From: Mytilus californianus | Taxonomy: Eukaryota | Reading direction: 5' to 3' | NCBI RefSeq assembly: GCF_021869535.1 | Contig: NW_026262668.1 | Location: 101,370,001 to 101,434,000, forward strand | DNA: 64,000 bases | Shown: positions 4,356-46,570 of the stretch, one piece after another | How positions within the stretch are numbered: position 1 is the first letter of the stretch | Layout of the letters: every line of letters begins with the position of its first letter | Translations under genes and position numbers: made by a program | The notes under the pieces: model-generated | Told to the model about the DNA's origin: nothing | Database searches by the model: none | The model's input: only the letters and a program-made list of their open reading frames with translations

Positions 4356-5459
4356 ATGATGTTTGGTTTATGTACACCATGGTCAAGGTTTCCAATTAAT
4401 CCAAAGCAGTTCAATTTTAGACTTTCTGTCATGCTTTTCACAATGTTATTTTTCCTTTTCTTCATCAATTATGTAAATGAACTGCCATCAATATTATCTT
4501 TACCACAAGAAACTGAATCAATGAGAACACTGTATAAGGACTGTATAGTACATAAAGAAGAAGTCATGGGACATATCACTTTTACTGTTTTCACTTCATT
4601 TGATTATATTGAATCAAAGTTCATAGCAAATCAAAATGCTTTAAAGAACTGGAAGGCTATCGAAGGTGTCAAAAACTTTGTTCTTTTTACAAACTGTAGT
4701 AGAGCACGTAAACTTGGTAAATCAATGAATTTTGTAGTACTACCAGTTATGGATTCAGCAATCGAGGGAGTTCCTGTCTTAAAATCAATGTACTTGAAGG
4801 TTTTAGCCTTGTACCCTACATCATATATAATGTTTTCTAATGCTGATATAATGTATGAAATTGATTTGATGGAAACAGTCAGATTTGTGAACAGTTTTGT
4901 ACAGGATGAAGGATTAGCAAGGAAACCTGTACTAATTGTTGGAAAGCGAACAAACTTGGACATTGACAGTGGCAAAAATGAATCATGGAAAAGTCTGATT
5001 AAAAAATCTGCTACATTAGGAACAAAGTTTAATGCTGATGCACTGGATTATTTCATCGTTGATAGAAAGTTTCCTTGGAAGGCATTTCCGAAGTTGGTAA
5101 TTGGACGTGTTGGTTATGACAACTGGATTGTAGCATTTTCTCGTTATAAGAACTTCACAGTAGTAGATGCGACAGGTTCGATATTGGCAGTACATCAAAC
5201 TATCAATGGTGCAAACTTTGAAGGATTCTCACACCATCATTTCTCATACAACCGTGACTTAATAGCAGAATCACTGCCTTCATATCAGTATGCATTATGG
5301 GGTAGGACAGAATGTTGTTACTTAGCAACTGGCCATGACAGTTGTGGTCAGCTGTATGTCAAAAACAGAACTTTAGTGCCACCATATTGTTTTCATCATA
5401 ACTTTCTACATGATATTAAAAAGCTTTTCAAGACACTGTTCGGGTTAGGATGTACATGA
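4356..5459 (+). CDS. Intronless type II membrane protein, putative GT-A-fold glycosyltransferase of an uncharacterised family (367 aa)
   Basis: Uninterrupted ATG-to-TGA ORF in AT-rich DNA. N-terminal hydrophobic anchor (LSVMLFTMLFFLFFINYV), stem, then YIMFSNADIMY (DxD-like NxD), IVGKRTN, ALDYF, VIGRVGYDNW and LAVHQT motifs, and a Cys-containing C-terminus. Product assignment is inferred from motif layout. Confidence 0.8.
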   Translation: MMFGLCTPWSRFPINPKQFNFRLSVMLFTMLFFLFFINYVNELPSILSLPQETESMRTLYKDCIVHKEEVMGHITFTVFTSFDYIESKFIANQNALKNWKAIEGVKNFVLFTNCSRARKLGKSMNFVVLPVMDSAIEGVPVLKSMYLKVLALYPTSYIMFSNADIMYEIDLMETVRFVNSFVQDEGLARKPVLIVGKRTNLDIDSGKNESWKSLIKKSATLGTKFNADALDYFIVDRKFPWKAFPKLVIGRVGYDNWIVAFSRYKNFTVVDATGSILAVHQTINGANFEGFSHHHFSYNRDLIAESLPSYQYALWGRTECCYLATGHDSCGQLYVKNRTLVPPYCFHHNFLHDIKKLFKTLFGLGCT

Positions 5460-18352: not shown

Positions 18353-19749
18353 TTTTTTTTTTTAAATCTCTTGGTAGCGTCAATGTGAGACGCTTTCCTT
18401 TGCTCTTTACTTATGTCTTGTTGTATATATTATGCTGTCATTATATATGTGTATTGCTAGAAGATTACTAAATAATAATTGTAATAACTTGTTTCCAGTC
18501 CTTTTGCTTTAAAAGTATTTCAATAAAATATTTTGAAACTACATGTATTTAAACTAATGCACTTCAAATTTACCTTGAGTAGCACAGTACGAGTCGATTC
18601 GGGTGTTTTACTTACTGGCATGCAGAAACGTAATCCTCCTAGTATGACAGTTGTTTATATTATTCGATGACATTTGTTGCTTTTGCTTTATTACTGGTAG
18701 TTTTTTATGTTTCATTGCGTTATTGTAGTATAAATTGTCAAGCAAAGTAAGTTTTGGGTTTATTACTTTTAACTGCTGAAGATTTGTTAACGGCTGTTTT
18801 CAGGGACATGGCGATTTTCTAGGTTGGAGACCTCGTTCTCTAAGCACCTGTCTGCAGCGAGATAATAATCGTAATTTAAATTTGTATATTATGAAGTCCA
18901 GGAAGACAGTTGAAGGAATTTAACCCTGCATTCCATTGCAGAATCATAATCTTATATCTTGGGTGTTTCAAAATATCATTCTTTTTTTATTTGATGATCC
19001 AATAAAATATTTTGGAAACTTGAGATAAGGATGAAAAGTTGCTTGGTTTACTTCGTGTAATGGTTATTCCCTTATATGCAATGAAATATTGTGTGAAATT
19101 TTCACGATAGTACTGGACAGGACAAAACTTTATCCATGCCAAGTATATCTTTATTTGAAACAAAGATAAATTCTGCAAATTTTTTTCGAAAAATGCCAAT
19201 TTAGCAAAGACTGATTGGGGAATACAATGGTGGTATTACCCCTTATAACACTAGAAATAGACATAAAACCCGAAACAGATGAAAAAGGACACCCGAAAAT
19301 CATTTTGTTTTCCGAATTTTTCCCCTTCTTACCAAAAATATACAATCATTAGGGAGGATTACAAACTACGGTTTGCATACTACCTTCGGGATTGAGAACA
19401 ATAGTGATTGGCTTGATCTGGAAGATGGATAGACGACACGAAAACAGGTCTCCTTATTTAGCACTATAAATACATAACTAAATATATTATAATTGTTACT
19501 CCCACTAGACGTTTTGCAAGCAACAATCAATATATTTATATCCATTTAAAAACACTTGTGTTCCTGTGTCCTGTCGATACCCAGATTCCGATCCAATACC
19601 ATCTGGTCGATACCAATATGTTGGCATAGCATAAGTTCGGGCTTGATGCTTTTTATGAGTTATGTTTCCACTATACCTGTTCGAGGGGTACTGGTTGATA
19701 ATGTTTGATATTTTTATCGGTTGAAATTCGGCTTTCCACAAGCTTTCAG

Positions 19750-20290
19750 TAACTACAGGTACTTGAAGACGGGTACGTTGAGTGTTTTATTTACGTCCGT
19801 TTTAAATCAACGTTTAATAGACTGGTCGGAAACGTTTGATATTGTGTCCGGTGACAAGTTCGGCTTTCGTCCCGGTCTTGCTACAGTAGATGCTATTTTT
19901 GCTCTTACATCATTAATTTTCAAATCTTTATCAGCCAAAAATCGTTTTTATTGTTGTTTTGTAGACTACACGAAAGCTTTTGACACTGTTCAAAGATTTT
20001 TGTTATGGTATAAACTATCAAAAATTGGTACTCAAGGTAAAATTTGTCACTGGTAATCAAATGAATGTGTTCTAATGTCAGTACTTGTGTGTGTTGATGG
20101 TTTAATTCTGATTATTTTACTAATATAGTAGGTTTAATGCAAGGTGAAGTATTATAACCAATATTTTTTTTTCAATGAATGTCAACGACTGTGAAATGGT
20201 TTTTATAGATAGTGACTCTATTCCCTATGAAGTAAAGGAGCTAACTTTATTTTTACTAATGTACGCTGACGATATGGTTACTTTTTCAGA
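19750..20290 (+). mobile_element. Non-LTR retrotransposon (LINE; RTE-X/CR1-like) RT, piece 1 of 4
   Basis: NYR...LFTSVLNQRL...KFGFRPGLATVDAIF...CCFVDYTKAFDTV...GLMQGEVL...LLMYADDMV. Confidence 0.9.
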
Positions 20291-29515: not shown

Positions 29516-29589
29516 TCGTTGCAGGATTAGTTTCCCTGTGTCTCGCATTTTACGACTTTTGTGTGAGACGAAAGATAAAAGACAAATTA

Positions 29590-30912
29590 CAAATTCTATG
29601 TTCCATTGGAATTTTAACCAAAGATGAAGAACTGGGTCTTCTTTCACTGTATTGGATACCTAAACTACATAAGTGTCCTTACAAACTACGTTATATTGCT
29701 GGGTCGTTCAAGTGCTCCACGAAACCTCTTTCTAAATTATTAACATCAATTTTATCAGCAATCAAAGTCGGGCTTCAAAGTTATTGTGAAACTACCTTTT
29801 CTGGAGGTGCATGGCGTGAATCAGATAAGGATACTAAAAAATTCCAAAGATCTTTTAGAGTACAAGCAATCTAAGACTCTTTCATCTTGCAATAGTATTA
29901 AAACATTTGACTTTTCTACACTTTACACAAGTATACCCCATTCCAAACTGAAAGACAAATTGAAAGAGTTGGTCCTGCTTTGTTTCATAAAAAAGAATGG
30001 CCTACGTAGATACAAGTTTCTTGTCTTAGGAAGGGATAAATCGTACTTTGTAAAAAATCACTCTGATTCAAACAAAAAATTCTCTGAAACTGACATTATC
30101 AAGATGCTCGATTTCTTGATTGACAATATATTTGTTACGTTTGGAGGACGTGTTTTTTAACAAACAATCGGCATTCCCGTGGAAACCAACTGTGCTTTTC
30201 TTCTTGCCGACTTGTTCTCTTATTCGTATGAGACTGACTTCATACAGGAACTTCTTAGGAAGAATGGAAAGAAGTTAGCAGTATCCTTAAACTTCACTTT
30301 CCGCTATATAGATGATGTTCTCTCACTAAATAATTCAAAATTTGGTGACTATGTTGAACGAATCTATCCCATCGAACTTGAGATAAAGGATACAACAGAT
30401 ACAGTCTGCATCATAGCTTGACTTACATCTAGAAATTGACAACGATGGTCGGTTGAAAACAAAACTTTACGACAAAAGAGATGATTTCAGCTATTAAACC
30501 AAGAGTTCCAAGTTGTGCAGTTGAAATCGTCCCTTCGTACATTTTACGGACGCCATCACGAGTTGATTGACCGTTATGGAGTATCCGTTACACAGATGAC
30601 AACGAATATGTTCCAATTGTCGTAACTACAATCCCGTCCCCTTTTCCCCGAATGTGACCTACCGAATTAGACTTATCACAGGGTGTGTAATAACATTAGC
30701 AACACGACGGGTGCCACATGTGGAGCAGGATCTACTTACCCTTCCGGAGCACCTGAGATCACCCTCAGTTTTTGGTGGGGTTCGTGTTGCTCAGTCTTTG
30801 GTTTTCTATGTTGTGTTTTGTGTACTGTTGTTTTTCTGTTTTTCTTTACCTTGTCAGTTTATTTTCGATTTATGAGTTCGAATGTCCCTTTGGTATCCTT
30901 CGCCTCTCTTTT
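29590..30912 (+). mobile_element. 5'-truncated, disrupted Penelope-like retroelement (Naiad-type RT plus 3' tail)
   Basis: LYWIPKLHKCPYK.RYIAGS, SIKTFDFSTLYTSIPH, QTIGIP.ETNCA..LADLF, FRYIDDVLSLNN, YLDLHLEID...KLYDKRDDFS, RHHELIDRY. Frameshifts near 29810 and 30410, TAA at 30158, internal deletion near 30490, no C-terminal GIY-YIG. Confidence 0.85.
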
Positions 30913-31163: not shown

Positions 31164-32755
31164 TTAATATTTAAAAATGGCTTTGTCAAGATCTTTCGGC
31201 ATTGGCATGGTATATTTTACATGTGGCATAGAGTCTGTTCTCTGTGTTTTGTCTTCTTCGTCGGTGTTTTCATCAGCAAACATGTCACTGACCTTTTCTC
31301 CTGGGTTGATAGGTTTATTGTCGTGTTTCTTTAGTGTCATTGATATTTTCTTAACAATTGGTTTAATTTTGGTTTCAAGTACAGTTGTTTCCATGCATGT
31401 CTCTATTTTATGAGCTGATTCAACTGCTTTATCCTTCGAGGGTGCATTATCGTTTTTAACTTTTTTCACTAAAGCGATCAAATCAAAAGCGTCCTTTTTC
31501 CGTGAAGACAATAAACTTTTCTCTTCATCTGCTCTTTTTTCTGAATTAATATATTTTTCATGACTACGATATCTATCTCTGCTTTCTTTCCGGTCTCGGT
31601 ATTTATCACGCAATCGATCTCTATCACTACTCCTACTACGTTGCCTTCGACTGTGAGCCTGTCCATGTCGGTCAAAAGTATCTCTGCTTCTTCGCTGGTC
31701 CCTACTTCGATTTCGATATCGAGATCGTTCATCTCTGCTATTGGATCGAGAATGATGCCTGTCAAGTGATCGATCACGAGATTTATCATCTTTTCTATAA
31801 CTTGTTTTACCACTTTTCTGTGGAGAAACTTCAACGGATTTTGACATTGATCTGGATGATTTTAGAGATGAAGAAGAGGTTGATGATGAAGATGATTTTT
31901 TTGATCGGGAGCTAGATGATGATGATGACGATGATGACGAAGACGACGATGAACCAGAGCTACTTCTTGACCTTTTGCGAGAACGAGATAACGACTGCGT
32001 CTGTTTACTTCTGTTCCTATTGCTGGTATCCTGCTTTATATTTTCCTTTTCACAGAGTTTTGTTTCATGTTTCCTATCTTTGTTTTTTAAGTGCTCGTCA
32101 ACATACGCCTTCTCGTCATTTAAATGAATTCGGTCATCTTGACGATCACGATCATCGTATCGGTCACGGTCAATATGAGACTGGTATTGGTCGCGCTCAT
32201 TTATTTGTTTACTATGATCTAATGAATAACGATCATATTGGTTTCCCCTTGATAAATGTTCATCTCGATAACGGTAATCGGTTGGTGAGTATCTTCGAGG
32301 ATATTCGTATGTTTGGTATGTTTCCCGATTTCGATCAAACGGGTGTTTATAGTAGTCATACCGGTTTCGATCTAAATCACGATGTGGACCAAGGTCAAAT
32401 GATTCTAACGGTTGGTATGTTTGTACTGAACCAAAGGATCTGTCATCGATGGCTCTTCTATTCAGTTCTGGTAATGTAATTGAATTTTCATCGTATAAGA
32501 ATCTGTTTTCAGCATCAAAATCGCGATTAATTTCAGACTCATCGTCATTCGTCGTTTCTTCCGCGTGTTGTTCTGAATCCTGTGAAGTTAGATAATTGAA
32601 TGTTTTATGTTTCTCGGCATTTGCAGTGAAGTGTTGCATATAGACCCGCTCGAGATCACCATAAGAGAAGCTTGTCGTTGTGTCGGAGTCACCTATATTA
32701 TCGTAGCTATCTTTCAACATGTCCAAACCAGGAATAGATTCAGCTGGGGTCAACT
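31164..32755 (-). CDS. Large Arg/Ser-rich low-complexity exon (about 530 codons) of an unidentified gene; upstream exon(s) not located
   Basis: Open 1.59 kb frame preceded by a good acceptor (ttatttttctaatttcAG|AG TTG ACC; AG at 32757-32756). Contains RD/RY repeats, a Ser run and RS/SR dipeptides, and ends AIFKY*. The supplied ORF start is a TTG, so the true start lies upstream. Confidence 0.7.
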
Positions 32756-39655: not shown

Positions 39656-39769
39656 ATGGATGCTCACACATCGACCACATTAGAAGCTTTAGAAAGAACA
39701 GCAGCTTGGGTACAACAAGTTCAGAATAGAGTCGAAGAAATGAAAAATTCACCGAGCAGTTCTGCCCTG
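39656..39769 (+). CDS. CUT-class homeobox gene, coding exon 1 of 4
   Basis: ataATGG context; MDAHTSTTLEALERTAAWVQQVQNRVEEMKNSPSSSAL; donor CTG|gtaagg, phase 0, compatible with exon 2. Confidence 0.7.
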
Positions 39770-41264
39770 GTAAGGTTTTTGTTTGTATTTCTGAATGACG
39801 TATGTGTCTGCACGATTTCCGCAATGTAATCATTTTATTGAAGCATTCATGTTAATTATCTTTATTTAATATTTAAAAAAAATAAAACCTTCATTGATCC
39901 AGGCATTCGAGAGTTAGTCTAACATTAAAATGATCAATCAACAATGTACATACTGTTAGAAGTGCACAAAAGGGGGAGGGTTCCATTGTTTTCAATTTTT
40001 TTAGCAAGGACATTTGTACCTTACCTTCATGAGGCACAACAAATGCAGTAATACAATAAAAAAAATACTGAGAAGATTAAACTTAACCCCACCAATACCT
40101 AGAGCTTATTTTGGCGCCTACGGCCTTACCTCTGTGGTCTTTGAATTACAATGTTTGCATGCAATGGTTAGAATATTAAGCATTGCATTGGATGTTTATC
40201 AAATTTTGAGCATGTTTGGATTTTGGGTCATGAATTAAATAGTAATACAACAAGAACCATATCCAGATGTGGATCCAGGATTTTGAAAAAAGGGGTCGCA
40301 GGCCCCCCAAACTAGACAAAATTTGTAGTGGAACCAGTAAAAAGTCTGGATTAACCATAAATAAAGCTCCATAAGGGGCTCAGGGACCACCTAAATTTGC
40401 CCTTGATAACCCTTCTTTTCATTATTTTTATTCCGTATAAAGACATATAATATTATATGTCTCTGATCCTTATGAAATATAATCAAAATAAGGAAAATTG
40501 AGGTTTATATGTTATATTTCACTTTAGTAATAATATATTGTAGACATTTTCATACCAACAGTTATTTATTACATGAACAATAAATCATCTGCCAAACTAG
40601 TTACAATATCACATTATTTATGCATTCATGTACTAAGGAACAAGAAACTAATCCCAACAACTTACAGAAATTCATAATAATTGTTTTGTACTATTATTGG
40701 TGAACTGAGTTACATGACTTATATTCAGATTTATGGACTTAATATCAATAATAATAATCAATACTTTAATCAAAGGGGAGGATGGAGGGGAAATACTTTA
40801 GTTTTCATTTTGTTACTTACATGTACAAGCTAGAAAATAAGTTATTATAAACGTGTAGGATACAGTACTAGTAACCACATTCCAATTAAAAATTACAGGC
40901 AGTTCTTATATTTTTACATACAACAAAATAGCAAAGGTGCATTCATGTCGGGCCAAATTTAATATTTTACAACATGCAGTCAGTTTTTGGCTTATGCAAT
41001 TTCCCATCAACAAATTTATTATTACTGCCAAAATACTTTTATACATACCGGCACATGTAGATGTATAGTATATACATAATATATAAATATAATTTCTTAT
41101 CTACAAGTATTGAACCTGACTGTTTCGAACTGAAATGTGGTGTTCAAATAAATGCAAACTGATTTCTACCAGTTGTTAATATATGTACATATACATTGTA
41201 ATTAAGAGATACATAACATTATAGTCCCTCATTATAAAGAACTTCAGTATTAAATAATGTAAAA

Positions 41265-41521
41265 TTTCAAAGAAACCAAGAAGGCAATAATAGTGCTTGT
41301 ACATGTACAATAATAAATGTAGAATGTAGCATTTCAAAGAAACCAAGAAGGCAATAGTGCTTGTACATATACAATAATAAATGTAGAATGTAGCATCTCA
41401 AAGAAACCAAGAAGGCAATAGTGCTTGTACATGTACAATAATAAATGTAGAATGTAGCATCTCAAAGAAACCAAGAAGGCAATAATGCTTGTACATGTAC
41501 AATAAATGTAGAAAGTAGCAG
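41265..41521. repeat. Four tandem copies of a 64-bp unit in intron 1
   Basis: caaagaaaccaagaagg at 41268, 41335, 41399 and 41463. Confidence 0.9.
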
Positions 41522-42847
41522 CAGATATTGATTGTGCACAAAACTATCATTGATTATTTACCACTCCACACACACTTGATATTCTCCTTGCAATACAATT
41601 GTGCCATGGCAAGGTAAAGGATATTGAACATAAAAAAGTCTGTAAAAGAAAGTACATGGACAATTTTACCAAAATAGTATGTAAATGACCAGAGACCACA
41701 ATTAATGAGAGAAGGTTCAAAATTTTAAATACTTCACTCGTTCTTCAATCAATAATATCTCTTCCTTACTTTAAAAAATTGGAGTTTACATTATTCCTTC
41801 ACTGCAATTTCTTATTTTTTGGTTATAGATACATGTTTAAGAAATATTTTTGTCCTATTTGTTGGTTTTAGTTGTAAAGCCCCCAAAAAAAAAAACATAA
41901 TTGTGCTTCATTTCTCCCTACCAACAAAATGTGCCCTAATTTTTCATGTCTACATTTGATGGACATTTTTGAACAGGTAAAGTTGAAGTCTAGAACATGT
42001 CCATTAATTGTCGAAATAAAATATTTTAGAAAAATAAAATCATATTCACCAACCTTCATTTACCAACCTATGACATACCAGATAGAAATGTTGCATAGGT
42101 CAGACTAAAAAAACTATCTTCATAAAAAATCGTGTGTGCAAAAGATACATGTGTCAAACATTTCATAATAACTTGTGTGATAAAATTCAAATGTAATTTT
42201 TTTGTGAAACAAGAGCCACAGATCTTAGTACATACAATGTATGTATGTTAATTTAATCAGGTAACTAATAAATATATAATACATGTGTACATGTGTGTGT
42301 GTATATCATTAATAAGTAAAGAGCATAAAATTTATGTCTGAAGTAAACAATTAACTTGTTATATACATTCCTCAAAGGACATATGTATAGTACATTTGTC
42401 CATGTTAAGTAATTAATTACATTTGTATCAGATATACAGGGAGAGTATATAAAAGTTTTCCTTGAGTTTCAAATTACATTTTCTATTGTCCTACTTAAAG
42501 TCTTTAAGGTGTATAACTTTGTTTATATTTTTACAAGTCAATTATGTAAGGTTATGTAAATTTATGAGGCAAATGAGAATTAAAAACAATACATATATAC
42601 CCTATTTATGTATATGTGATTGATGAAATCCCAACTAAACTAGTCTAATTTAAATAATTTTTAATTAGATTCTTAAAATGCTCCTGTTCGATATGTTGAT
42701 ATGTTGCCCTAATCAGAACAGGAGCAATTAAAGGATCTAATTTTATCATGTTTATCAGATTGCAACTAAACTGAAATTCTTTTCGCACAGACACACTCAC
42801 ATAAATATTGTATGAAAACACACTGTTAATCTTTTAAATATTTACAG

Positions 42848-43015
42848 GAGAGTACAGTGGAGGAAATGAATATTGTTGATGAAGATGATGTTAAAATGGA
42901 ACCATGTGAAAAAGATGATAATAGTTTGACAGACCATCATGATGAAGCTCTCAAGATGGCACAAACTTTTCCTCCTTATATACCAAAGGGCAAGAATGGA
43001 AAATCCATAAATTAT
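42848..43015 (+). CDS. CUT-class homeobox gene, coding exon 2 of 4
   Basis: Acceptor tttacag|GAG, 56 open codons (ESTVEEMNIVDEDDVKMEP...GKSINY), donor TAT|gtaagc, phases 0/0. Confidence 0.8.
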
Positions 43016-44350
43016 GTAAGCATATTCAAGGGTTTAATTTATACTTGTTCCTGTTTCTGAAGATTTTTTTTTCTAGTGTGACTTTCCTTTTTCTTCTTCA
43101 ATAGAAGTTCTATATGTGTGTAATGTAATAATGTCAGAAACTTGAGGTTTATTATCGGTGAAAACAGAAATATTGTCATTTCAATAAAATCTCTGATTGA
43201 ATTCCTTTCTATTATTTTTTTTTAAATTGGAAAAATAAAATTCTGGTGATCAAATTTTGTCTTTCTTAAATCCAGATCTGTTTTGTTTATGATCATTTAA
43301 CACAACTTCAACTTAAACACCTGTCCAGGAATCTGTTCTGGACAGTCGACTTCAGTTTTTAAAAGTGCTTATTTGTCCCTTCAATTTCCAAATTCACTGA
43401 ATTTTTTTTTTTTAAATGTACGATATCATATTAGTTTGAAAGACTTCAAAAATGAACTCTTTTTAAAAACGTAAATGTTAGCTTGTGCATGATGACAAAC
43501 TTACAGTTTATTTTTCTTACACATCACAAATCATAATCTTATACATGTATTGCACTATTTAGTTTACTTACTGGTAAAAATGCTTTCTGTCATTTTCCTT
43601 TTTCAAATTGGGTCATGATTTATGGGCTGTATGCACTTTTTATTTGAACCTACTCATTGTCAACTGAAAGAAACAGGGTCTTCAATGGGAAATGTAGTAC
43701 TGTAACCATGGTAACATTTATTATTTTTATTTCTGCTGTTTCAAATAGGTAAAAATGGTCTCCGATATCTATTTGTAAAAAGTTCAAAACTCTGAAACTT
43801 CATGTACATGACAAAAATCAACTTTGACTGAAGATGATCTTCCCATATGAAATAGGATCCCTGTCCAGTACCAACAGATGAAGTCCCTTTATAAATCTAC
43901 CATCTTTTAAATGGGATATTGTACCGAGATGAAAATTATGTATAGATGCTTAAATTTGTAGTATATCTATAGGGTATTCATTAAACTTTCAACTTCTGTT
44001 AAATTTTAAGTGATTCTGAAATGTAGAGGGTGGATGATTGCCTGAGTAAATGTTCCAAATTTTATTTTTGATTTTAACCAGGAAGTTAATAAAATTACCC
44101 TATTACTACTCAAAATGTATTGCTCTCTTAAATGCCAGTCATGACCCTTCAAGAATTCTCCAAGAAACCATGAACATGATGAAGAGGGCTACTAGTAGAA
44201 GAAAGTATTTGAAATTTTGCAGTCTAATATATAGGGAATAAAAAATCTATCCCTCAATTTTGATGTAATTGCATTTAAGTAATGGGGGAAATAATTGGAT
44301 CCTGGTTCTAGTCAGTAGTTAAACTTGCACAATATATAATATTGATTTTG

Positions 44351-44752
44351 TTATGCCCCCGCCAGCATTAAGTTTTACCCTTGTCCGATTGTACGTCCCA
44401 AAATTGGTTTCCCTTCTTTAACTTTAGTTTGCCTCAACCAAATGTTATGAAACTTAAACTCAATGCTTATTATTACCACAAAACACAGATCAAGTTTGAA
44501 TTTTGGTGGCGTCACTTTTACCGTTCTAGAGTTATGCCCCTTTACAAATGGAAAAGTTGCGAAATTTTTCGTTTCCGTTCTCTAACTTTAGTTTGCCTCA
44601 ACCAAATGTTATGAAACTTATACACATTGCTTATTACCACAAAACACCGATCAATTTTGAATTTGGGTAGCGTCACTTTTACCCTTCTTGAGTTATGTCC
44701 CTTTATCACGTTATATGCAAGCGGGGGCATCATCTGTGTCCCATGGACACAT
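44351..44752 (+). mobile_element. Complete HINE-like element (family F4) in intron 2
   Basis: atgcccccgc ... gcgggggcat inverted repeats, two cores, terminal hairpin tgtgtcccatggacaca. Confidence 0.85.
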
Positions 44753-45004
44753 TCCCCATTTATTTACTAATTATTTATACTAGGGTCTAATAAAAATGTA
44801 CCTGAATCAAATTTCTCGTGAATTAAACCAGATCACTGCATTGTTAATTTCATACTATAAAACAATCTCATGTTAAAATATTCAGTATTTTTACAGACAG
44901 TGCGAGACTCTCAAGGATAGTCAAGGTTGTTTAACACCCTGTAGTAATATTAGTGGTCAAGTCATAGGGTGTTAAAGTCATTAACAATTTTATTTTTTTT
45001 TCAG

Positions 45005-45263
45005 TCTCACATTGATGTAAAACAGACTGTAAAAGACTTTAAAGAAGCTTTGGAAAAGTTTGGTATTTCACAAAGGTTTGCCTGTACACATATCATGGAA
45101 AACACTAGTCAAGGCAATCTAAGTTTCTTGTTAGATAAAGGAAAGAATAAACTTTGGTCAGAAATCAGCCCAAGGGGAAGAATACCTTACATTAGAATGA
45201 GACGTTGGCTAGATAGCCCAGATGAACAAAAAGCCACTATGGATTTATTACACAAGTCAAAAG
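45005..45263 (+). CDS. CUT-class homeobox gene, coding exon 3 of 4 (CUT domain)
   Basis: Acceptor ttttttcag|TCT. IDVKQ...ALEKFGISQ...SQGNLSFLL...KLWSEISPRGRIPYIRMRRWLDSPDEQK aligns by eye with the CUT consensus (INTKE...LKRYSIPQ...SQGTLSDLL...KPWSKL..GRE.F.RM..WL..PE). Donor G|gtaatt, phase 1. Confidence 0.9.
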
Positions 45264-45779
45264 GTAATTAATTGTATATCCATTGAGTTACTGGGAAACT
45301 CTTTTATTTGTGGATCATGATCGAAAAAACAAGGTAGCTGTAACACTACAGAATGCTTTTTCTTTACATAAATTTTATAGTATTGAAAATAAGCATCTTT
45401 TTCTTCATTTTTTTTAATAATAGCAATATTTATATTGAAACTGACCAAACATAAGTGAATTCCATACAAATTGTATACCAGATTTCATAAACAAAGCATT
45501 GTAATCCAATCTACACTTATAATTGTTTGAAAAATTTATTGTGCAATTTCTGATGTATCTTCATCCCACTTAGGCATTTATAGTAATATATGTTAAAGTT
45601 GTGTGTCTTCTAAAAATAATAGATACACATATCAATTTCATTTCTCTCTTGAAAAATGACATTCATCTTAAATTTTGTTTTATGTATGGTTATTTATGCA
45701 AAGAAGTTTTGATTTCAAAATGGACAGATCATACTCGCAGACAAATACAGGTATTGACTTTTTATTTTTACTTTTTCAG

Positions 45780-46570
45780 ATTATAAGAAAGGAACTAGAA
45801 TCAGTGGTGATACTGTATTGACAAAGAGAGAAAAGTTCTCTGTGTTTCAATTATTAGTGCTATGTCGAGTGTTTGAGGAAGACAATAATCCGAGTTTATC
45901 AACACGAGCTCTCCTTGCAGATAAACTAGAGGCTCCATTAGAGCGTATAACAATTTGGTTCCAGAACCAACGTGCAAGAGGTTTTCCAGCCAAAAAATTT
46001 CTAAAGGAGTCAAATATGGGTAAAGATCCTGTTGATATTCAGTCATTTTCAGGGTTATCTCCCAAAAAAGATCATGGAATGCGAAAGTCAAACACACCCT
46101 TATCTAATGGACCGTCAAGTAGCAATTCAAATTCACAGTTAACACCTCAGCAAGTGGAATCAAACAAACATGATGCATCAGTTCCTTTATCTCAGGAACA
46201 TGAGGCACAGATACAATCATGTATTAGTTCAGTTTTAGGATCATCAGTTTGTCAGAACTTGCCTACTACATCAAGTTCTCAAATGACCACTGCCCAGATG
46301 CCACCGTTTCCATTTCCGCTTCAACTTTTAAGTATGGCACAACAGCCAGTCAAATCGGAACAGTCAGCATTATCACTGTCAATGACAACAGGACAAACTT
46401 ATTCACCATTCTTGGGATTTCCACCAAGTATTTTTACATCAGCACCAACAAATGTTCCACAAAATACAGTAACTGATGCTGATGCACTAAACTTAATGAG
46501 GACATGTCGCCCAATGACTATCAAACAGGAGCCCCGTGACCCATCACCTTTTCCTGGAAATTCAGACTGA
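45780..46570 (+). CDS. CUT-class homeobox gene, coding exon 4 of 4 (homeodomain and S/T/Q/P-rich tail)
   Basis: Acceptor ctttttcag|AT completes GAT in frame. Gap-free homeodomain register: R5, F8, Q12, L13, L16, F20, P26, R31, L34, A35, W48, F49, Q50, N51, R53. TGA at 46568-46570; AATAAA at 46989 and 47262. Confidence 0.92.

Follow-up and report, generated by a model that had tools for sequence, protein, structure and literature searches.

The stretch of DNA analysed here (the window) comprises 64,000 nt of the Mytilus californianus genome (RefSeq assembly GCF_021869535.1, contig NW_026262668.1, positions 101,370,001 to 101,434,000 of the forward strand, read 5' to 3'). It carries a gene encoding a protein with one CUT domain and one homeodomain, and the recognition residues of these two domains are the subject of this report. 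The four-exon gene model was obtained by placing a near-identical public protein, P0001 (443 amino acids, aa), on the window with tblastn. The exon lengths total 1332 nt, which equals 443 codons plus a stop, and canonical donors and acceptors were read from the sequence at all exon borders. The features of the gene are collected in Table 1.

Table 1. The mussel CUT-homeodomain gene and its parts, in window coordinates
Feature	Position	Strand	Evidence and details
Mussel CUT-homeodomain gene	39656-46570	+	Four exons, 443 aa
Coding exon 1, M1-L38, phase 0 end	39656..39769	+	tblastn, 100% identical to P0001; ATG 39656; donor ctg/gtaagg
Coding exon 2, E39-Y94, acidic linker region, phase 0 at both ends	42848..43015	+	tblastn; acceptor acag/gag, donor tat/gtaagc
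Coding exon 3, complete CUT domain, S95-K180 and first base of D181	45005..45263	+	Pfam, AlphaFold2, RNA; last base 45263 opens codon 181; donor GT at 45264
CUT recognition helix (helix 3), SQGNLSFLL	45107..45133	+	Sequence, CUX2/ONECUT alignments
Phase-1 GT..AG intron between CUT domain and homeodomain	45264..45779	+	Sequence and RNA joint
Coding exon 4: linker, homeodomain, Ser/Pro/Gln-rich C-terminal region	45780..46570	+	Open reading frame (ORF); tblastn, 99% identical to P0001; even RNA coverage; start at 45780 preceded by ttttcag; stop codon 46568-46570
Homeodomain VLTKREKF...ERITIWFQNQRARGFPAK, 60 residues, no insertion	45815..45994	+	Pfam 45.7 bits; three model helices
Recognition helix ITIWFQNQRAR (45947-45979) and family signature GFPA	45947..45991	+	Sequence; family alignment; model; codons W48 = 45956-58, Q50 = 45962-64
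C-terminal motifs DALNLM and TIKQEP	46481..46534	+	Motif scan of orthologues

The model was compared with RNA evidence from the transcript contigs of three studies and from one 2026 stranded RNA-seq run (about 6% of the run). Both joints of the CUT exon are GT..AG: 43015>45005 was found in three transcript contigs (three studies) and 13 raw RNA reads, and 45263>45780 in three contigs (three studies) and nine raw RNA-seq reads, where it is listed as 45261>45778 with cut +2. The exon 1-2 junction has indirect support, from loose contig ends at 42847 that carry the last 30 bases of exon 1. RNA coverage was even across the exons and zero across the introns, except for a repeat in intron 2, and the first-mate orientation of the stranded reads is consistent with + strand RNA. 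The only differences between transcripts and window in the two domain exons are synonymous (45028 T>A and 45931 G>A). A first-pass annotation, made from the letters of the window, had placed a phase-1 intron between the two domains, and this intron is confirmed by the sequence and by the RNA joint. Its position is common to other bivalves, and the intron-retaining predictions P0025 (oyster-type), P0044 (Mytilus), and P0052 (with the heterodont-like CUT helix SQGNLSFLMEKG) break at the same intron position. The mussel locus is an intact, transcribed gene.

The repeat in intron 2 (44404-44770) is a tandem pair of a ~162-bp unit, with 91% identity between copies. It reached 1,000-20,000x summed word depth in the transcriptome contigs and about 100x in the raw RNA reads, with numerous variant joints and loose ends in the RNA data. 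It looks like a dispersed, heavily transcribed mussel repeat (like a short interspersed nuclear element or a satellite) that is unrelated to the exons of the gene.

Pfam identified both domains on the + strand, the CUT domain (PF02376, 56.1 bits, E 3.8e-15) in the translation of 45005-45262 and the homeodomain (PF00046, 45.7 bits, E 5.7e-12) in that of 45782-46570. On the assembled protein, the CUT domain scored 54-56 bits over residues 94-172 and the homeodomain 45-46 bits over residues 196-247, with nothing else found; the CUT domain thus lies N-terminal to the homeodomain, the arrangement that defines the CUT class. An AlphaFold2 model of the CUT-linker-homeodomain block has a mean predicted local distance difference test score (pLDDT) of 84 and contains five CUT helices and three homeodomain helices. 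The CUT helices are above pLDDT 90, while the linker (residues 90-101) is disordered, with pLDDT below 50. Helix 3 of the homeodomain stops at residue 152, which is position 55, immediately before an invariant GFPA. The top Foldseek matches of the model were the DNA-bound two-domain chains of ONECUT2 and HNF-6, with POU domains after them. Submitted alone, the homeodomain matched DUX4 HD2, Aristaless, and platypus sDUX at 40-43% identity.

The first-pass annotation had singled out the recognition residues of both domains, and all of those it listed are present when read directly from the sequence. The homeodomain has R5, F8, L16, F20, I47, W48, F49, Q50, N51, R53, A54, and R55, with the recognition helix ITIWFQNQRAR, and the CUT helix reads SQGNLSFLL, with N and F at the positions where the consensus has T/S and D. 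Position 48 is F in ONECUT and in SATB. The comparison made there for position 50 agrees with Table 1 of PMC4901127, which gives M in ONECUT, H in CUX, and Q in SATB as well as in ANTP and PRD-like homeodomains; H50 in CUX is also given in the passages of PMC5322547 that were searched.

These residues are strongly conserved. Ten orthologues covering all the major bivalve lineages sampled, from Solemya to Mya, agree completely at 58 of the 160 columns of the CUT-linker-homeodomain block. The invariant columns include the CUT helix residues S-Q-G-N-L-S-F-L, R5, and W-F-Q-N-Q-R-A-R-G-F-P-A, and position 47 of the family homeodomain is I or V. More widely, the N and F of the CUT helix were found in all 35 family sequences that could be compared (35/35), and WFQNQRAR(G/Y)FPA in every family homeodomain (57/57). 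For comparison, among 48 multi-CUT proteins of the CUX type, 128 of the matched helices carry S/T and D/E at these two positions and the homeodomain has WFHN, and in our alignments the ONECUT CUT helix is SQGTLSDLL. The first-pass annotation had been ready to give up its reading if these residues varied freely among orthologues; they do not, because they are invariant across bivalve lineages. The residue combination is real and atypical for the CUT class, and the observation stands well above chance.

Beyond the two domains, the C-terminal region contains a short motif that differs by lineage. A comparison with orthologues (P0032, P0034, P0177, P0007, and P0015) gave QPLDLST for heterodonts; scallops, Pinctada, and Tegillarca have QPLNFST, and Mytilus has DALNLM. 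DALNLM is the Mytilus counterpart of QPLNFST/QPLDLST, a PxDLS-like motif of the CtBP type. Beside it stands TIKQEP, a SUMO-type psi-K-x-E site that reads (I/V)KxE(P) in orthologues. QPLDLST is the canonical PxDLS form bound by CtBP, and psi-KxE is the SUMO consensus. We also observed that heterodont and unionid family proteins terminate in E-P-(E/D)-L-D.

Orthologues were found throughout the bivalves. P0001 is 99% identical to the mussel protein, and its 90% cluster includes M. coruscus and M. californianus proteins annotated as "homeobox protein cut-like 1"; the M. galloprovincialis orthologue is 97% identical. Full-length relatives occur in other pteriomorphs, namely scallops (Mizuhopecten, Ylistrum, Argopecten), Pinctada, Tegillarca, and oysters (Saccostrea, Crassostrea), and also in the protobranch Solemya, the unionid Sinanodonta, and the heterodonts Mercenaria, Mactra, Mya, and Ruditapes. 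We searched 1.84 billion representatives by HMMER with a family profile (A2) that covers the CUT-linker-homeodomain block. All named matches of at least 190 bits were bivalve, with family fragments lower down, and the next complete CUT-plus-homeodomain proteins were three-repeat CUX proteins at about 100-123 bits (e.g., from a rotifer and a crinoid). Neither the word-based searches nor this profile search found an orthologue outside bivalves. We read the recognisable family as bivalve-wide and, in the libraries searched, bivalve-only. One feature of exon 1 divides the orthologues: the N-terminal motif LEALERTAAWV is kept in mytilids, scallops, Pinctada, Tegillarca, and oysters and is absent in Solemya, Sinanodonta, and heterodonts.

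The family is already catalogued in the oyster, and the mussel gene is another member of it. In the parts of Paps et al. (2015, PMC5322547) that were searched, oyster Cgi_CUT1 (CGI_10006727) is described as a lineage-specific CUT-class gene of "CUT Clade I", a clade that also takes in dissimilar members: Cgi_CUT2, in which a CUT domain is lacking, together with an Echinococcus protein and Pinctada proteins. The Cgi_CUT1 homeodomain, machine-read from their supplementary figure S7, is the same as that of the Crassostrea members P0014, P0036, and P0184, apart from optical character recognition noise, and these form one family with the mussel protein, with 65% identity over the CUT-homeodomain block. 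Judged from its sequence, the mussel protein is the orthologue of Cgi_CUT1. The searched passages of the text and supplement of Paps et al. do not take up the recognition residues, the invariance of these residues, or the PRD-like character of the homeodomain. In the other literature searched, no discussion of the recognition residues and no mention of "CUT Clade I" was found. The present analysis contributes the definition of the orthology group and its confinement to bivalves, together with the fixation of non-canonical contact residues, the evidence of expression, and the mismatched affinities of the two domains.

Lopx is reportedly another spiralian orphan gene that was once confused with the CUT class. 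It was rejected as an identity for the mussel gene: the Lopx homeodomain (…YPN…KIWFQNRRRKD), which together with a C-terminal Lopx motif characterises that gene, differs throughout, and Lopx is Cgi_Hbx2, not Cgi_CUT1 (Barton-Owen et al. 2018).

The nearest relatives of the two domains were evaluated separately. A CUT-only family profile scored 39.9, 35.8, and 31.0 bits against CUX2 repeats 2, 3, and 1, compared with 24.8 bits against ONECUT, and SATB chains did not match the CUT profile even at E<=10. Among solved structures at E<=1e-3, the homeodomain alone matched only PRD, PRD-like, and ANTP-type domains, among them DUX4, PHOX2B, Paired, Pax6, Aristaless, and Goosecoid; homeodomains of the CUT class did not appear at that threshold. 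Under a hidden Markov model (HMM) of the family homeodomain, CUX homeodomains scored 12-26 bits, while DUX and other typical domains scored 30-50. The best matches outside the family were mammalian DUX arrays and fungal multi-homeodomain proteins, the latter scoring as well as PRD-like domains. Since fungal homeodomains score equally, the similarity is to the homeodomain consensus rather than to a specific PRD or donor family. The layout of the two domains was also compared. The family profile aligned with ONECUT2/HNF6 in one piece and free of gaps over 149 residues (profile positions 2-150 against residues 4-152, 51-53 bits), and CUX repeat 3 plus homeodomain aligned over 2-154 with nearly the same spacing. 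Given the gap-free ONECUT spacing and the similar CUX spacing, the layout is the classical one.

In a tree of CUT domains, the family and three Mytilus-only paralogues formed a clade (96/92) on a long stem, outside all CUX repeats (92/78). ONECUT, represented by one sequence (the 73-residue CUT domain of HNF-6), fell outside the grouping of the family with CUX (90/69). Membership in ONECUT, CUX, and SATB/COMPASS was considered and rejected. One CUT domain and one homeodomain would fit ONECUT, but the homeodomain has W48/Q50, not F48/M50, and the CUT domain does not group with ONECUT. CUX proteins have three CUT domains and H50, while the mussel protein has one CUT domain in 443 aa and Q50. A SATB or COMPASS identity does not fit either, as Pfam found only the CUT domain and homeodomain (no COMPASS/ULD) and the homeodomain has no insertion.

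Other orphan genes combine a CUT domain with a homeodomain. Mytilus has shorter, apparently tandem paralogues that are its own: P0057 and P0178 in M. coruscus, on one contig, and P0198 and P0199 in M. edulis. A paralogue and a family protein share 34% identity over the collinear CUT-linker-homeodomain block (E 2e-22). The paralogue CUT helix is SQSTISELY, with the canonical T and E, and its homeodomain is TWFNNQRARNFPAG, with N50, a very unusual residue at position 50. The paralogues have the RAR-x-FPA helix stop in common with the family, so the fusion of a CUT domain with a typical homeodomain predates the split between the two. They branch outside the bivalve crown (94/89), and an origin in the Mytilus lineage was borderline rejected (approximately unbiased test, p = 0.050); no relatives of P0057 outside Mytilus were found by search. 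In Nematostella vectensis, P0105 (LOC5508153) has a CUT domain (Pfam 55.3 bits, helix GQPTLNALL) followed by two W48/Q50 homeodomains (IWFQNKRR), an internally duplicated layout. It scored 12 bits (CUT) and 28-31 bits (homeodomains) under the family HMMs and has a very long branch in the CUT tree, and neither analysis found a specific sequence affinity to the family. P0105 shows that bivalves are not alone in pairing a CUT domain with a typical homeodomain, and that this pairing may be ancient. A further orphan CUT gene, Acut, is present in amphioxus (PMC10515288).

To place the unusual residues on DNA, we relied on the structure of ONECUT2 bound to DNA. There, S364 and Q365 each form hydrogen bonds specific to a base, and D370 has one direct base-specific bond, to cytosine, and another mediated by water. 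The backbone is bound by T367, S369, and R373, and the homeodomain contacts bases through N476 (N51) and R479/R480 (positions 54/55) (PMC11490551). When the mussel CUT helix is aligned to ONECUT2, the Ser-Gln pair is kept, while N stands at T367, F (F135) at D370, and D at the position of R373, where the family has Asp or Glu. At the ONECUT2 contact positions, the mussel homeodomain has N51, A54, and R55. The protein would act as two tethered helix-turn-helix modules, the CUT domain and the homeodomain, with about 17-20 residues of flexible linker between them, an arrangement also found in ONECUT and POU factors. The contact set R5/I(V)47/Q50/N51/A54 is Engrailed- and PRD-like, so a TAAT-type half-site is expected, and the homeodomain would read this rather than use the ONECUT (F48/M50) or CUX (H50) mode. 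In the CUT module, the Ser-Gln core contacts would be retained and the Asp-cytosine contact would be impossible; F135 may pack on a thymine methyl where the Asp of ONECUT2 reads cytosine. With an invariant Phe in place of a base-contacting Asp and Asp/Glu in place of Arg373, the CUT half-site is probably shifted from ATCGAT/ATTGAT. As residues are altered in both modules, the composite site should differ from those of known CUT proteins, and the family probably reads a DNA site different from those of its known relatives. At the C-terminus, the PLDLS/PLNFS-type motif and the psi-KxE site would act with a CtBP-type co-repressor. These motifs suggest putative co-repressor recruitment, which is a weaker proposal, and a weak one for Mytilus.

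Taken together, we consider it very likely that this gene encodes a sequence-specific transcription factor, the orthologue of Cgi_CUT1, that belongs to an orphan, bivalve-only family of the CUT class and serves as a two-module reader with a probably altered composite site. The same reading holds that the gene arose in stem bivalves or earlier and pairs a CUX-like CUT domain with an ordinary Q50-type homeodomain. Several points weigh against it. The claims on specificity are drawn from homology to ONECUT2 and from general homeodomain rules, and the presumed placing of F135 toward the DNA rather than the core follows from alignment to the ONECUT2 contact list. The restriction to bivalves depends on the content of the protein libraries, and unannotated or very divergent orthologues in other molluscs or annelids would escape the searches. 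In the passages of Paps et al. (PMC5322547) that were searched, "CUT Clade I" is dated to the lophotrochozoan ancestor, without statistical support. The CtBP-type motif is degenerate in Mytilus (ALNLM, without the proline).

Several explanations of how this combination arose were weighed. The first-pass annotation had suggested that a CUT domain might have been shuffled onto a non-CUT homeobox and had proposed asking whether the two domains disagree on their relatives. By score they do disagree (a CUX-like CUT domain, a PRD-like homeodomain). Shuffling, in which a CUX-type CUT exon or 5' half was joined through the phase-1 intron to a PRD-like or otherwise typical Q50 homeodomain exon in the bivalve stem, predicts such a difference in nearest relatives; divergence of a duplicate and retention of an old homeodomain are possible alternatives. 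We regard shuffling as possible, short of a reading we would adopt. The CUT profile favours CUX2 over ONECUT, the homeodomain favours PRD-like domains and scores CUX homeodomains below DUX and typical ones, and the two domains occupy separate exons, divided by a conserved phase-1 intron. However, no CUT-less donor gene with RARGFPA was found, as the homeodomain-only matches look like fragments of family last exons, and the presence of fungal multi-homeodomain proteins among the best typical domains points to consensus similarity. Moreover, the CUT domain and homeodomain are spaced exactly as in ONECUT, an agreement not expected of a random graft, and the CUT exon is 0-1, not phase-symmetric. 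This spacing argues instead for a divergent duplicate of ONECUT, or of the repeat-3-plus-homeodomain end of CUX, whose homeodomain drifted back to W48/Q50 under new selection, the "reversion" also raised at first pass. The single CUT domain and single homeodomain, the alignment to ONECUT2/HNF6 without net indel at 51-53 bits, and the near-identical spacing of CUX repeat 3 all fit a duplicate, as does the fact that CUT domains are otherwise known only in the CUT class; a long stem branch (1.5-2.1 changes per column) would reflect fast early divergence. Yet the CUT domain nests in no CUX repeat and not with ONECUT, and the homeodomain would need many parallel changes to consensus beyond positions 48 and 50. 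In addition, the linker and homeodomain account for only ~27 of the 51 bits obtained with ONECUT, and single PRD-like homeodomains reach 34-39 bits with the same profile. We regard a duplicate of this kind as about as possible as shuffling.

If the family instead continues an old CUT-class lineage whose homeodomain was of the typical Q50 type from the start, and which was kept in bivalves and lost or made unrecognisable elsewhere, the F48/M50 of ONECUT and the H50 of CUX would be the derived states. We find this unlikely. The true CUT domain and two W48/Q50 homeodomains of Nematostella P0105, the amphioxus orphan Acut (PMC10515288), the position of the family outside all CUX repeats, and the lophotrochozoan date of "CUT Clade I" in the searched parts of PMC5322547 speak for it. 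On the other side, there is no non-bivalve member among the 1.84 billion representatives, P0105 shows no special affinity (CUT 12 bits, homeodomains 28-31) and has a very long branch, and the Paps clade, as presented in those parts, is statistically unsupported and mixes unlike sequences. Neutral drift in a decaying or non-functional lineage-specific gene is highly improbable. Lineage-specific homeobox genes in general often evolve fast, and the Mytilus-only P0057-type paralogues do, but here the frame is intact, splicing is correct, transcripts occur in several studies, and the 58 invariant columns from Solemya to Mya include every recognition residue. A bolder version of the chimera also has to be considered, namely that a CUX-type CUT domain and a Q50 homeodomain were joined in the bivalve stem, that the change from Asp to Phe was then fixed, and that the result is a bipartite code found in no characterised CUT protein and unchanged through bivalve evolution. 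This full sequence of events is somewhat unlikely, and we put it forward tentatively.

Other parts of the window were also noted. On the + strand, 4356-5459 is a long single-exon ORF of 367 aa with a hydrophobic N-terminus, and on the - strand, 31164-32753 is a long single-exon ORF of 529 aa, very rich in Arg/Ser/Asp repeats and SR-type-like; neither had a Pfam match. Retroelement ORF fragments lie at 19721-20056 and 29563-30160 (+), the former with a weak RVT_1 match (21 bits, under the Pfam cut-off).

CUT-homeodomain factors are a textbook example of DNA reading by two tethered modules. To our knowledge, only ONECUT, CUX, and SATB have been studied structurally or biochemically. The bivalve family has the ONECUT-like layout with the base-touching residues swapped in both modules, and the new set is fixed in every sampled bivalve lineage. 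Because the contact residues are swapped and fixed, the family lends itself to testing, on a natural variant, how the composite site depends on CUT helix 3 and on homeodomain position 50. Its members are also candidates for lineage-specific regulators in economically important molluscs, and one well-defined orthology group that spans the bivalves can now be recognised within "CUT Clade I" of the oyster survey.

Compared with known systems, the mussel protein resembles a different relative in each of its parts. With ONECUT (HNF-6/ONECUT1, ONECUT2; PDB 2D5V, 8T0F) it shares a single CUT domain and homeodomain, identical spacing, the best fold match, and the retained Ser-Gln pair and N51. It differs in having W48/Q50, A54/R55, and SQGNLSFLLD where ONECUT has F48/M50, R54/R55, and SQGTLSDLLR, and the ONECUT CUT domain, which scores 24.8 bits, is the more distant one; the extra loop residues are missing from it. 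With CUX (Drosophila cut, CUX1/2), whose CUT repeats are the closest solved relatives (2 > 3 > 1), it shares the KGR/RGR loop pattern, a similar spacing from repeat 3 to the homeodomain, and W48, whereas CUX has three CUT repeats, a long N-terminal region, H50 (WFHN…), and S/T and D/E where the family has N and F. The homeodomain is about 40-43% identical to those of the PRD-like Q50 group (DUX4 HD2, PHOX2B, Aristaless, HESX1) and Engrailed, with the same residues at positions 47, 50, 51, and 54, but those proteins lack a CUT domain, and GFPA does not end their helix after position 55. Acut and Nematostella P0105 are likewise orphan CUT-plus-homeodomain genes outside ONECUT, CUX, and SATB, and P0105 also has W48/Q50. 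Oyster Cgi_CUT1, as presented in the searched passages of Paps et al., belongs to the same orthology group as the mussel protein, with one CUT domain and the same homeodomain (…LERITIWFQNQRARGF…).

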